A DNA stretch of 64,000 nucleotides from Octopus sinensis (GCF_006345805.1 NC_042997.1:185690001-185754000); one strand, 5' to 3'; positions 11,843-45,125 are shown, numbered from the stretch's first letter. The notes: generated by a model not told the origin, from the letters alone. Numbers and translations are program-made.

Positions 11843-12376
11843 GAGTGAGAGAGCAGTGCATGCCATCAAAGTGACACTGGGGTAAAATATACGAAGCCCA
11901 ATATACCCATCATGACTACCCGTCTGATAAGGGTACACCAGGCACATGCATCACAACCATATGTGCGCGACATGGTGATTTCATATCAAGATAAACAGCA
12001 CATGACCTTGCAGGTGGGGCCCAGTTAGAATTTTCTTCAGGTTGAGTAGCCCATCCCGCTCAAAAGGTCCCTGAATAAGGGTTGTTTAAGGATGTAGAAA
12101 GAACCACCCATGTTTCCAGAGGTGTACTATTCAAACCCCAAAGAATCCCTCTCAACACATGGCTATGATGCTCCCCCACTACTTCTGCTCGTGATCAGAG
12201 ATGCACATATCGTCAGCCACTAAGGGACATGCTCAACTGGTTAAGATCAAACAACTGACAAGCAAATCTGTGGTATCGAGCAGAATGTTTTCTGTAGCCC
12301 ATCTTTTATACCAAGACAAAATAATGTACATGATAACACTTCCAATCAGTTAAGATCAGAAGCCATGAGGGCCACT
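11843..12376 (-). mobile_element. Non-coding (TAA)n-inserted element, slightly 5'-truncated
   Basis: Homologous to the full copies at 33612, 42646 and 44559, and flanked by (TAT)n on both sides. Confidence 0.88.
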
Positions 12377-13194
12377 ATTATTATTATTATTATTATTATT
12401 ATTATTATTATTATTATTATTATTGTTGTTGTTGTTGTTGTTGTTGTTAGTAGTAGTACTAGTAATAGTAGTAGTAGTTGTTGTTTTTGTTGTAGTAGTA
12501 GTAATAATAGTTGTAGTAGTAGTAGAAGTGTTAGTAATAGTAGTGGTAATGGTGGTGTTAGTAGTAGTAATAGTATTGCTGTTGCTGTTGTTGTTGTTAT
12601 TATTATTATTATTTTTTTTTTAGCGTTGTTTGCGTCATTGTCGTCGTCGTTATTGACGTTGTTGTTGTTGATGACGCTAATGATGATGATGATGATGATG
12701 ATGATGATGATGATGATATTGATGATGATGATGGTATTGATGATGATGATGATGATGATGATGATGATTGTGTTGTTGTTGTTGTTATTCCACTCAGGCT
12801 GACTTTGCTTTTGATCCTTTCAGGGGTCGATAAATGGAGTACCAGTTGGGCACTGGAGTTGACATAATCGACTTGTTCCTTCTCCCTCTAAAACTTTTTG
12901 ACCTTCTGCCAAAATTTGAAAAGCATTAATTATTATGAACACCTCCTCCCTATTAAGAATTACACATTCTTGATTTTTTCCCACTATGTTAGTCTTGCTT
13001 ACACGCAATACCCTCACATCAGCCCATATACTCACACATATACATACACACACATTCTGTGTTTTGTCCTCTTCTGTTCATAATGTTTTACTTAATGTAA
13101 ACCCTTTACGGTTAATAAACAAATCATCATCATCATCATCATCATCATCATCATCTTCTTCTTCTTCTTCATTATTATTATTATTACTATTATT

Positions 13195-13702
13195 GAGTGA
13201 GAGAGCAGTGCATGCCATCAAAGTGACACTGGGGTAAAATATACAAAGCCCAATATACCCATCATGACCAACCATCTGATAAGGTACACCAGGCACATGC
13301 ACCACAACCATATGTGCGCGACATGGTGATCTCATATCAAGATAAACAGCACATGACCTTGCAGGTGGGGCCCAGTTAGAATTTTCTTCAGGTCGAGTAG
13401 CCCATCCCGCTCAAAAGGTCCTTGAATAAGGGTTGTTTAAGGATGTTGAACGAAACACCCATGTTTCCAGAGGTGAATTATTCAAACCCCAAAGAATCCC
13501 TCTCAACACATGGCTATGATGCTCCCCCACTACTTCTGCTCGTGATCAGAGATGCACATATCGTCAGCCACTAAGGGACATGCTCAACTGGTTAAGGTCA
13601 AACAACTGACAAGCAAATCTGTGGTATTGAGCAGAATATTTGCTGTAGCCCATCTTTTATACCAAGACAAAACAATGTACATGTTAACACTTCCAATCAG
13701 TT
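13195..13702 (-). mobile_element. (TAA)n-inserted element copy (triplication unit 2)
   Basis: Same sequence, with (TAT)n flanks. Confidence 0.88.
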
Positions 13703-14553
13703 ATTATTACTATTATTATTATTATTATTATTATTATTATATTATTATTATTATTATTATTATTATATTATTATTATTATTATTATTATTATTATTATTA
13801 TTATTATTATTATTATTACTAATATTAGTATTAGTATTATTATTATTGTTGTTGTTTTTGTTGTGTTGTTAGTAGTAGTACTAGTAATAGTAGTAGTAGT
13901 TGTTGTTTTTGTTGTAGTAGTAGTAATAATAGTTGTAGTAGTAGTAGAAGTGTTAGTAATAGTAGTGGTAATGGTGGTGTTAGTAGTAGTATAGTATTGC
14001 TGTTGCTGTTGTTGTTGTTGTTGATGACGCTAATGATGATGATGATGATGATGATGATGATGATGATGATGATGATATTGATGATGATGATGGTATTGAT
14101 GATGATGATGATGATGATGATGATGATTGTGTTGTTGTTGTTGTTATTCCACTCAGGCTGACTTTGCTTTTGATCCTTTCAGGGGTCGATAAATGGAGTA
14201 CCAGTTGGGCACTTGAGTTGACATAATCGACTTGTTCCTTCTCCCTCTAAAACTTTTTGACCTTCTGCCAAAATTTGAAAAGCATTAATTATTATGAACA
14301 CCTCCTCCCTATTAAGAATTACACATTCTTGATTTTTTCCCACTGTGTTAGTCTTGCTTACACGCAATACCCTCACAACAGCCCATATACTCACACATAT
14401 ACATACACACACATTCTGTGTTTTGTCCTCTTCTGTTCATAATGTTTTACTTAATGTAAACCCTTTACGGTTAATAAACAAATCATCATCATCATCATCA
14501 TCATCATCATCATCTTCTTCTTCTTCTTCATTATTATTATTATTACTATTATT

Positions 14554-15062
14554 GAGTGAGAGAGCAGTGCATGCCATCAAAGTGACACTGGGGTAAAATA
14601 TACGAAGCCCAATATACCCATCATGACTACCCGTCTGATAAAGGTACACCAGGCACATGCATCACAACCATATGTGCGCGACATGGTGATCTCATATCAA
14701 GATAAACAGCACATGACCTTGCAGGTGGGGCCCAGTTAGAATTTTCTTCAGGTTGAGTAGCCCATCCCGCTCAAAAGGTCCATGAATAAGGGTTGTTTAA
14801 GGATGTTGAACGAAACACCCATGTTTCCAGAGGTGAATTATTCAAACCCCAAAGAATCCCTCTCAACACATGGCTATGATGCTCCCCCACTACTTCTGCT
14901 CGTGATCAGAGATGCACATATCGTCAGCCACTAAGGGACATGCTCAACTGGTTAAGGTCAAACAACTGACAAGCAAATCTGTGGTATTGAGCAGAATATT
15001 TGCTGTAGCCCATCTTTTATACCAAGACAAAACAATGTACATTTTAACACTTCCAATCAGTT
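14554..15062 (-). mobile_element. (TAA)n-inserted element copy (triplication unit 3)
   Basis: Same sequence, with (TAT)n flanks. Confidence 0.88.
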
Positions 15063-15409
15063 ATTATTACTATTATTATTTTATTATTATTATTATTATT
15101 ATTATTATTATTATTATTATCATTATTATTATTATTATTATTATATTATATTATTATTATTATTATTATTATTACTAATATTAGTATTAGTATTATTATT
15201 ATTGTTGTTGTTATTGTTGTTATTATATGAACATAGCTTATTTTGCTGGATATGATGGAAAGTGTCAGCTGCGCACAGACAGCAGACTAAGCTATCATTT
15301 GTTTACTTGCCATGTTTCATGAACTCTGCGAAGGGTTAATTATTTATTATTAATTATTATTATTATTATTATTATTATTATTATTATTATTATTATTATT
15401 ATTATTATT

Positions 15410-15518
15410 GAGTGAGAGAGCAGTGCATGCCATCAAAGTGACACTGGGGTAAAATATACGAAGGCCAGTATACCCATCATGACTACCCGTCTGATACTGG
15501 CACACCAGGCACATGCAT
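15410..15518 (-). mobile_element. (TAA)n-inserted element, heavily 5'-truncated (109 bp)
   Basis: Retains the gagtgagagagc end and has (TAT)n on both sides. Confidence 0.85.
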
Positions 15519-43546: not shown

Positions 43547-43606
43547 GCTGGGCTTCGTATATTTTACCCCAGGGTCACTTTGATGGCATGAACTGCTATC
43601 TCACTC
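43547..43606 (+). mobile_element. (TAA)n element 3' terminal 60 bp
   Basis: Reads gggcttcgtatattttacccc...tctcactc followed by (AAT)n. Confidence 0.8.
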
Positions 43607-43655
43607 AATAATAATAATAATAATAATAACAAGAGCAACAATTATAATAATAATA

Positions 43656-44016
43656 AGTAAGGACGTTGAAAATTGAAATACAAAAGATGTGTAATCTTAA
43701 AGCGAGAACTGTTCTTATGACTGTGGGTGCCCTAGGTATGATAAGAAAGGGATGTCAGAAACATCAAGATAATATACCAGGAGAACAATTCTCTGAGAAA
43801 TCTAAAACACTGAGCTGACAAGTACGCACCACATCCTGAGAAAACTCTATCAATTTAAATGTTTGTGTTGTATTACATGAAGATATTTCGCTACTACTCC
43901 TGCCACTTCCCCTCCCCAAGCTTTCATTCATGCTGTGACATCTCTTGTCCTTTACGCTCTCTAGGACGCTGGGTGTGTCTCAGCAAATGATTGTAACAAG
44001 CATGCAGATTAAAAGT
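43656..44016 (+). mobile_element. R4/Dong-like 3' fragment, family 2, copy b
   Basis: IEIQKMCNLKARTVLMTVGALGMIRKG. It has the same 5' junction as copy a, indicating a local duplication. (AAT)n flanks. Confidence 0.8.
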
Positions 44017-44289
44017 AATAATAATAATAATAATAATAATAATAATAATAATAATAATAAATAATAATAATAAAAATAAATAATAATAATAATAATAAAT
44101 AATAATAATAATAATAATAATAAAAATAATAATAGTAATAATAATAAATAATAATAATAATAATAATAATAATAATAATAATAATAATAATAATAATAAT
44201 AATAATAATAATAATAAAAATAATAATAGTAATAAATAATAATAATAAAAATATTAATAATAATAATATTGTTGCTGCAACAAAATTCT

Positions 44290-44505
44290 TAATAATAATC
44301 CTCCCTACTCCAGGCACAAAATCTGAAATCTGGGGGAGGCGTATAGTCGATTACATCGATACCAGTACTCAGCTGGTACTTATTTCGTTGACCCCGAAAG
44401 GATGAAGGGCAAAGTTGACTTCGGCGGAATTTGAACTCAGAACGTAGCGGCAGATGAAATACACTTAAGCGTTTCGTGCTAATGATTCTTCCAGCTCGAC
44501 GTCTT
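44290..44505 (-). mobile_element. Meta-like SINE, tail M2
   Basis: Core gaccccgaaaggatgaagggcaaagttgac, with (ATT)n on the sense strand at both ends. Confidence 0.8.
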
Positions 44506-44558
44506 AATAATAATAATATCAACAACAACAACAACAACAGCAACAACAATAATAATAA

Positions 44559-45125
44559 ATGCCCTGATGCTGTACCGGGCAATGGCTCTCATGGCTTTTG
44601 ATCTTAACTTATTGGAAGTGTTATCATGTACATGTTTGGTGTTGGTGTAAAAGATGGACTACAGCAAATATTCTGGTGAATATCGCAGATTTGCATATCG
44701 GTTGCTTCACTTTAACCAGTTGACCACGTCCCTTTGTGACTGACAATATGTGCATCTCTGATCAATAGCAGAAGTAGTGTTTGTTGTGGGGGGAATCATA
44801 GCCATGTTTTGAGAGGAATTCTTTGCAATTTGAATAAAGCGCCTCTAGAAACATAGGTGTTTCATTCATTATCCTTAAACAACCTGTTATCAGGGACTTT
44901 TTTAGTGGGATGGGCTACTCCGCCTGAAGAAAATTCTAACAGGACTTCACCTGCTGCAAGGTCATGCACTGTTTATCTTGGTACAAGGTCACCATGTCGT
45001 GCACGTATGGTTGTGATGCATCAGCCTGGTGTACCCTTATCAGACAGGTAGTCATGATGGGTATATTAGGCTTCGTATATTTGTACCCTAGTGCCACTTT
45101 GATGTCATACGCTGCTCTCTCACTC
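44559..45125 (+). mobile_element. (TAA)n-inserted non-coding element, full length, more diverged
   Basis: Runs from atgccctgatgctgtaccgggc to ctctctcactc, with (AAT)n flanks. Confidence 0.85.

Follow-up and report, generated by a model that had tools for sequence, protein, structure and literature searches.

A structured non-coding element in (TAA)n tracts of Octopus sinensis, probably mobilised by Dong-like retrotransposons

The retrotransposon Dong, of the R4 clade, inserts into (TAA)n microsatellites with TAA on its sense strand in Bombyx mori, Anopheles gambiae and Biomphalaria glabrata (PMC3812793). The Bombyx element carries at its 5' end a ribozyme resembling that of hepatitis delta virus (HDV), which cuts at the TAA junction (PMC3774820). 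Site-specific long interspersed nuclear elements (LINEs) with a restriction-like endonuclease (RLE) are also known to have passengers: in Drosophila such a LINE carries along short non-coding elements, the R2 SIDEs (short internally deleted elements) and R2/R1 hybrid SIDEs (Eickbush and Eickbush 2012, PMC3414825). Here we describe a non-coding element of about 556 bp that lies in nine copies in the (TAA)n tracts of a 64,000-nt stretch of the Octopus sinensis genome (GCF_006345805.1 NC_042997.1:185690001-185754000; the whole stretch is called the window below), next to remnants of Dong-like LINEs that have the same insertion signature. We consider it probable that this element is a non-autonomous, (TAA)n-specific non-LTR (non-long-terminal-repeat) retroelement, mobilised through target-primed reverse transcription (TPRT) with enzymes that Dong-like LINEs supply in trans.

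Copies of the element were located by BLAST of one copy against the window, which gives exactly nine matches, at the coordinates of the original prediction. They are listed here with their strand, length and flanks, and divergence is measured from the window consensus.

42646-43202, plus strand: full-length copy, 557 bp, 4% from the consensus; (TAA)110 upstream and (AAT)15 downstream.
33612-34153, plus strand: full-length copy, 542 bp, 2% from the consensus; in an isolated (TAA)n tract inside unique sequence.
44559-45125, plus strand: full-length copy, 567 bp, the oldest, 12% from the consensus; flanked by (CAA)n(TAA)3 and (AAT)4.
11843-12375, minus strand: copy of 533 bp without the first 23 nt; member 1 of a ~1.36-kb tandem duplication.
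13195-13703, minus strand: 5'-truncated copy, 509 bp; member 2 of the ~1.36-kb tandem duplication.
14554-15063, minus strand: 5'-truncated copy, 510 bp; member 3 of the ~1.36-kb tandem duplication.
19723-19976, minus strand: 5'-truncated copy, 254 bp; the (TAA)n at its 5' side also serves as the 3' tract of the Dong-like remnant at 20092.
15410-15518, minus strand: 5'-truncated copy, 109 bp; a (TAA)n tract on either side.
43549-43606, plus strand: 5'-truncated copy, 58 bp; (AAT)n on the 3' side, and on the 5' side an array derived from a short interspersed nuclear element (SINE), not TAA.

The two ends of the element behave differently. On the sense strand the 3' end ...CTCTCTCACTC is present in all nine copies (with one mismatch in two of them) and is followed immediately by (AAT)n, just as had been claimed for every copy. 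At the other end, the three full-length copies share an identical first base, ATGCCCTGATG, immediately 3' of (TAA)n, while the six copies already described as truncated there measure 533, 509, 510, 254, 109 and 58 bp and start at consensus nt 24, 47, 47, 304, 448 and 499. A fixed 3' end combined with graded 5' ends is the mark of target-primed reverse transcription, so the polarity first read from these copies stands, and as expected of a retroelement moved in this way the element has no terminal repeats. We found no terminal inverted repeats at the element ends, and inside a microsatellite target-site duplications are unreadable. Divergence among the copies ranges from 1 to 12%, and since one 5' terminus recurs in three copies that lie 2 to 12% off the consensus, we regard the element as a discrete unit; the BLAST search finds no copy longer than this full-length unit in the window.

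Three of the nine copies (11843, 13195 and 14554) do come from a single triplication, as predicted. Because they lie in one ~1.36-kb tandem duplication, which takes in their 5' flank, the nine copies represent about seven independent insertions. The first of the three is 23 nt longer at its 5' end than the others, a difference that slippage between an internal TAA and the TAA run of the flank could explain. The copy at 33612-34153 differs from the consensus by 12 substitutions but by 22 indel events, many of them of 1 bp, and this odd ratio might reflect assembly errors in that stretch. Outside the window, a further copy of the 3' end, followed by AAAAATAATAAT, begins the O. vulgaris transcript comp2963_c0_seq1 (Additional file 2 of PMC9115989); exact-pattern scans of JGI metagenome contigs returned no further copies of the element.

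The placement of the copies is as regular as their ends. The 3' flank is (TAA)n on the element's sense strand in nine of nine copies and the 5' flank in eight, the sole departure being the 58-bp copy at 43549, which is joined to the SINE-derived array. The rule that (TAA)n always lies on the sense strand thus holds for all 3' flanks, and for the 5' flanks with this one exception. As (TAA)n tracts sum to only ~2.5 kb of the 64 kb (~3.8% of the window), the placement of the element and its uniform orientation are far beyond chance. The following tracts adjoin copies of the element or Dong-like remnants.

42313-42645, plus strand: (TAA)~110 target tract; separates the family 1 remnant from the full-length copy at 42646.
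44016-44268, plus strand: (TAA)~83 tract, 3' of the duplicated family 1 remnant.
15519-15642, minus strand: (TAA)~42 tract, flanking the 109-bp copy at its 5' side; reads TTA/TAT on the plus strand.
19977-20091, minus strand: (TAA)~39 tract, 3' of the family 2 remnant and 5' of the 254-bp copy.

At 43249-43303 two (TAA)n runs also enclose 55 bp of unique sequence, ending GAAAGAAGAAAAAAAAAG and single in the window, which could be what remains of a further TAA-targeting element after extreme 5' truncation.

These ends and flanks speak to whether the element spread without reverse transcription at all, as a DNA transposon, as a miniature inverted-repeat transposable element (MITE), or by segmental duplication of TAA-rich DNA alone. 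Local duplication certainly occurs here, in the 1.36-kb triplication and in the duplicate of the family 1 remnant described below. However, the pattern of one constant and one graded end together with the lack of terminal inverted repeats excludes such a mode of spread, the flanks past the TAA tracts are unrelated except in the triplication, and a copy is present in the transcriptome of another species, O. vulgaris. We give this explanation almost no credence.

That the element is non-coding, as originally proposed, is borne out by the indels among its copies, which break every frame, and by its longest ORF (open reading frame; 87 aa), which we considered as a coding candidate and which has no homologue. 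When a profile of full-length Dong-like proteins is run against the six frames of the element, 390 of 500 shuffles score as well; weak tblastn echoes of reverse transcriptase (RT) motifs B and C, on opposite strands, are attributed to chance on the same shuffles. The claimed absence of a tRNA head also stands, ARAGORN finding none in the element. More broadly, ARAGORN, Rfam and alignments to U1 and 5S reveal no tRNA, 5S, 7SL or small nuclear RNA (snRNA) head, and an Rfam search with E up to 10 yields spurious AT-rich matches only. A likeness to U1 and 5S that we saw by eye gives alignments no better than those of shuffles (p=0.52 and 0.30), and a hammerhead candidate, CTGATGA in the copy at 33612, is absent from the consensus and therefore unsupported.

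The behaviour of RNA polymerase III (Pol III) at T runs is well established, and the sense strand of the element contains TTTT at consensus nt 78, 334 and 512. Three such internal runs make transcription of the whole unit by Pol III unlikely, and we would expect transcription by RNA polymerase II (Pol II) or by read-through. The element thus has neither the small-RNA head of a SINE nor a transcript free of internal Pol III terminators, and 'SINE', one of the labels first suggested for it, is a poor description.

What the element does have is a strongly structured RNA. Folded as sense RNA, the copy at 42646 reaches -192.5 kcal/mol compared with -160.7 for its shuffles (z=-4.98), while its antisense fold gives z=-1.06. 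The 5' 204 nt of this copy are unremarkable (z=-1.09), and the stability lies in the remainder:

42850-43202, plus strand: structured 3' domain of the copy at 42646 (element nt ~205-557); z=-6.66, with 0 of 100 shuffles as stable.

The element consensus folds with z=-6.45, and its 3' domain with -5.2 on the sense strand and -0.9 on the antisense strand. Near-consensus copies have z from -3.7 to -4.7; for two more decayed, older copies z lies between -0.3 and -0.7. The predicted fold of the 3' domain (~350 nt) is a closed multi-branch structure in which the terminal CACUGCUCUC pairs with GAGCAGAUGUAGUG at the start of the domain (its counterpart in the consensus is GAGCAGAAGUAGUG), leaving only the last few 3' bases unpaired. 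About a fifth of the predicted pairs are G-U, which accounts for the difference between the strands and speaks for selection acting on the active sequence's RNA. Its presence on the sense strand only and its loss in older copies mark the structure as one of the active sequence at the RNA level, and it confirms the polarity of the element independently. Covariation adds nothing to the fold, the copies being too alike (one compensatory pair in 167).

A structure this strong and this strand-specific is also what one would see if the copies were retropseudogenes of a structured host non-coding RNA gene of ~556 nt, copied by Dong-like enzymes by chance, and the absence of coding capacity and of any likeness to LINE sequences fits such an origin too. 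Yet the element matches no Rfam family, its copies diverge by 1 to 12% in the manner of a long-lived family, and all of them, the full-length ones included, sit in TAA tracts, with no candidate master gene outside a tract; three internal T4 runs would moreover be unusual in a Pol III gene. We find this origin highly unlikely.

The structure bears in the same way on the suggestion that the 556 nt are only the 3' part of a longer autonomous LINE, the shared 5' end being a preferred stop or an internal RNA processing site. Just three full-length copies define that end, and a strong RNA fold could halt the reverse transcriptase at one particular position. But the shared end falls within the weakly structured third and not at the edge of the stable domain, the three copies that have it adjoin (TAA)n directly and lie 2 to 12% off the consensus, the Dong-like ORF profile detects no coding remnant (390 of 500 shuffles being as good), and the window is without any longer copy. 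A truncated LINE of this kind strikes us as very improbable.

We now consider the coding sequences in the same tracts. The original prediction counted remnants of three different RLE retrotransposons (at 19250, 20092 and 41891/43656), all in the element's tracts and with its polarity. The segments concerned are the following.

20092-20466, minus strand: Dong-like LINE remnant of family 2; keeps the final ~90 codons of the ORF (LIDVSIPADDNV..EKLSKYKDLEIEI.., from the end with the restriction-like endonuclease) and a ~100-nt 3' untranslated region (UTR), with (TAA)n on both sides.
41892-42312, plus strand: frameshifted Dong-like LINE remnant of family 1; (TAA)n at either side, and an inverted piece inside it at 42089-42170.
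43657-44015, plus strand: duplicate of the family 1 remnant; 97% identical to 41892-42312, truncated at the same point and with the same flank upstream.
19228-19682, no strand assigned: segment earlier called the third RLE remnant; not confirmed.

Two Dong-like families (20092 and 41892/43657) survive from that count, and for both the shared tracts and polarity hold as well. The 19250 segment drops out: as an RLE family it has no Pfam match and no protein homologue in either candidate frame, so it is without detectable homology; its flanks depart from the TAA polarity, and it is not repeated elsewhere in the window. The common truncation point and flank of 41892-42312 and 43657-44015 indicate one insertion that was later duplicated. 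The inverted piece at 42089-42170 is a copy of the family 1 remnant's own 5' junction (41862-41943, with some TAA flank) and is absent from the duplicate at 43657; it may be an artefact of a template switch or hairpin during insertion, or have arisen by rearrangement afterwards.

The remnant at 20092-20466 has 490 homologues at E <= 0.001. One window ORF has as its best named match a protein of Octopus bimaculoides (88% identity), which together with the O. vulgaris transcript marks the window as octopus nuclear DNA, and the window ORF is 87% identical to P0001, the product of an octopus-like contig (L001, family 2), over 91 shared aa. In this contig the ORF extends upstream through RPDIV...LIDISVP...EKLSKYKDL, a restriction-like endonuclease signature, and the copy is 5'-truncated and lies directly 3' of a SINE plus (TAA)4. 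A wider scan of protein representatives with the endonuclease piece returns 7117 relatives, of which the long ones have 1000-1200 aa with a central RVT_1 domain (at ~450-700 in the full-length relatives of 1100-1200 aa), then a zinc-binding motif, and the matched domain at the extreme C-terminus; no APE domain is matched in these long relatives. Of these representatives, the one nearest to the octopus endonuclease piece is from the genome of a sea anemone (Exaiptasia assembly GCA_001417965.1), with 72% identity, unusually high for hosts so distant.

Among the contigs that carry relatives, L004 holds a complete element that has sense-strand (TAA)n at either side, and L002 and L005 have (TAA)n at the 3' end, so that the contigs of three of the four full-length relatives end in this way. 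The fourth (L003, an ENA contig of 4744 bp) has a first ORF with an OTU domain and ends in (CTCTTACT)n instead of (TAA)n, so that this lineage has changed its target or its tail; the repeat loosely recalls the CTCTCTCACTC end of the element, probably by coincidence. An octopus-like scaffold, L006, contains three different Dong-like remnants in a train, all in one orientation with short (TAA)n between them. Both octopus-like contigs, L001 and L006, are short.

The proposed assignment to the Dong/R4 clade draws on architecture and on target. As in Dong, one ORF encodes a central RT and, at the C-terminus, a restriction-like endonuclease (PD...D/E...K, EK..KY), with no APE domain. Insertion is into (TAA)n with TAA on the sense strand, as in Dong, for the remnants in the window, for L001, L004 and L006, and for the 3' sides of L002 and L005. 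A match of the Dong-like piece to solved R2 proteins is weak (E=0.74) and falls at the right position. Judged by sequence, the coding remnants at 20092 and 41892/43657 are confirmed as Dong-like. Published RepeatMasker work classes octopus LINEs as Dong-R4, a group that it finds to be abundant in O. vulgaris and to count there among the LINE groups with the most recent activity (PMC13282606), and the repeat library of O. bimaculoides is reported to contain a full-length Dong (PMC9115989).

The element shares with its presumed Dong-like partner the target and the junctions: the same tracts, the same orientation, 5' truncations, and one 5' junction that is not TAA. Because two-sided TAA flanks and strict orientation are just what the Dong-like copies of the same tracts have, trans-copying by Dong-like proteins is the most economical account, and these proteins are probably the mobilising enzymes, given the common target, orientation and location. 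Another LINE lineage with (TAA)n tails or targets (of L1-Tx1, I or RTE type, each of which occurs in octopus) could instead move a non-autonomous TPRT element of this kind, with the Dong-like remnants mere neighbours. The element has no similarity to the Dong-like tails with which we compared it, LINEs of the Tx1 group are specific for other microsatellites and I elements end in TAA repeats (PMC3812793, PMC3747384), and octopus has active L1-Tx1, RTE and CR1 families (PMC13282606), all of which would suit such a partner. Against it, the review that surveys these targets gives only Dong elements as LINEs targeting TAA microsatellites (PMC3812793), and Dong-like copies with identical two-sided TAA flanks and orientation occur both in the window and in L001, L004 and L006. 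Furthermore, no non-Dong LINE remnant abuts these tracts in the window; tblastn and reading of the flanks show no LINE remnants there other than those listed. We rate a different partner as quite unlikely, and return to the Dong-like enzymes as the probable machinery.

The events that would produce the observed pattern can be set out as follows. The one 5' terminus common to three copies of different ages points to a discrete RNA with a defined start. This sense RNA would begin with AUGCCCUGAUG..., continue through a weakly structured 5' third into the very stable ~350-nt 3' domain ending ...CUCUCUCACUC, and probably run on into (UAA)n. An RT with a C-terminal restriction-like endonuclease, acting in trans and encoded by Dong-like LINEs of the same genome, would nick the (TTA)n strand of a (TAA)n microsatellite, and the nick would prime cDNA synthesis at the 3' end of the RNA. 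Copying that stops early would leave 5'-truncated insertions, the strand of the tract would set the orientation of each copy, and repeated insertions would build head-to-tail trains of elements with TAA runs between them. The Dong-like proteins may recognise the large 3' domain, a (UAA)n tail gained by read-through, or both.

Several results weigh against mobilisation by Dong-like LINEs. As stated earlier for R4 tails, the 3' end shows no similarity to the tails of the two window families or of four relatives. The full comparison, of the element with the 3' UTRs of the two window families and with any part of four full-length relatives, is likewise negative; that set comprises two tails and four relatives. 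The 3' UTRs of the two window families are not notably structured. A search for an HDV-like ribozyme, suggested as a check, detects no HDV-like or other Rfam family in the element, and a loose home-made HDV descriptor matches shuffles as often as the element; reading the element by hand for an HDV-like fold gives a 4-bp P1 at best. The window has no Dong-like 5' end, and in L004, a relative flanked by TAA, Rfam likewise detects no ribozyme within the 5' UTR; its models may thus be insensitive, and its negative for the element is a weak one. Finally, the sample of the element, one window and one transcript, is small and contains no sign of present-day activity.

There is a further proposal, which we put forward tentatively and hold to be unlikely. 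Here the element would derive neither from a LINE nor from a small-RNA gene but be a structured RNA of independent origin. Its ~350-nt 3' domain, possibly helped by a (UAA)n tail from read-through, would suffice to capture a Dong-type RT/endonuclease, and its exact 5' end would come from a promoter or from an uncatalogued self-cleaving motif. If true, this would be a third route to non-autonomy besides SINEs and SIDEs.

Whichever its origin, the element differs from each described system in some respect. Dong has an ORF; the element encodes nothing and has no sequence in common with the Dong-like copies compared, and the 5' HDV-like ribozyme of the Bombyx Dong has no detected counterpart in its 556 nt. 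R2 SIDEs resemble it in inserting by TPRT at the target of their LINE and in the variation of their 5' junctions, but they are visibly built of the parent's 5' ribozyme and 3' UTR and are found in ribosomal DNA, whereas the element is without recognisable parent sequence and targets a dispersed microsatellite. SINEs, whether headed by tRNA, 5S, 7SL or snRNA sequence, are likewise short, non-coding and LINE-dependent with a constant 3' end, but the element has no small-RNA head, contains three internal T4 runs, and carries no LINE-derived tail that we could find. NARTc/L1Tc and SIDER of trypanosomatids and the CR1 SIDE Persaeus/Zenon (PMC6740152) are non-autonomous, LINE-derived and lack a Pol III head; unlike the element, they have clear 5' and/or 3' sequence in common with their LINE and are not microsatellite-specific. 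The element cannot be filed as a SIDE, since parental ends are not recognisable, nor as a SINE, since the Pol III head is absent. We found no description of a non-autonomous partner of Dong in the literature searched, a search that lay outside Repbase and Dfam, where the element may already be held under an uninformative name.

The TAA specificity of Dong and the existence of non-autonomous riders on RLE LINEs have long been known, and our results leave that general picture unchanged and are a modest addition to it; what is new is the sense-only ~350-nt 3' RNA structure in the element. Site-specific LINEs with a restriction-like endonuclease, above all R2, are under study for targeted gene insertion, and the RNA-template needs of their proteins are a live question. 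If a short non-coding RNA that occurs in nature is copied by a Dong-type enzyme into a simple (TAA)n target, it would define the least that this clade requires of an RNA template. Such an element would also help to explain the build-up of long TAA tracts and head-to-tail trains in octopus genomes.

The remainder of the window, which is AT-rich and dense in microsatellites and interspersed repeats, holds some further features. An abundant SINE with a tRNA-like B box (GAGTTCAAATTCC), in which Rfam calls no tRNA, occurs at 20521-20723, 21077-21237, 12801-12910, 41757-41797 and 44299-44446, and at 95-320 of L001. When the SINE is read in the sense of its B box, (TTG)n(TTA)n is often found immediately upstream of the 5' head, with a short (ATT)n past the 3' end. 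The upstream repeat means that the same microsatellite loci carry this SINE in the orientation opposite to the Dong-like and 556-nt elements, and the SINE may seed the TAA tracts that both of these target. Its 3' half also forms tandem arrays of 182-185-bp units, at 22143-23063 (5 copies) and 60845-61207 (2 copies).

A 359-bp satellite with no Rfam match at gathering thresholds runs from 28032 to 29607 (4.4 copies) and then reversed from 29601 to 30527 (2.6 copies), forming a large palindrome with 97-98% matches per array. An ORF of 165 aa at 1140-1637 on the plus strand (…LERRRERYEVIYTWKIL…), without a Pfam match, resembles the C-terminal tail of another LINE type. On the minus strand, 37517-38418 is a remnant of a mariner/Mos1-type transposase with HTH_48 and Transposase_1 domains, split over two ORFs, and 32888-32961 is an intact-looking tRNA-Ile(GAU) gene (58 bits), the only Rfam match of the window at gathering thresholds.

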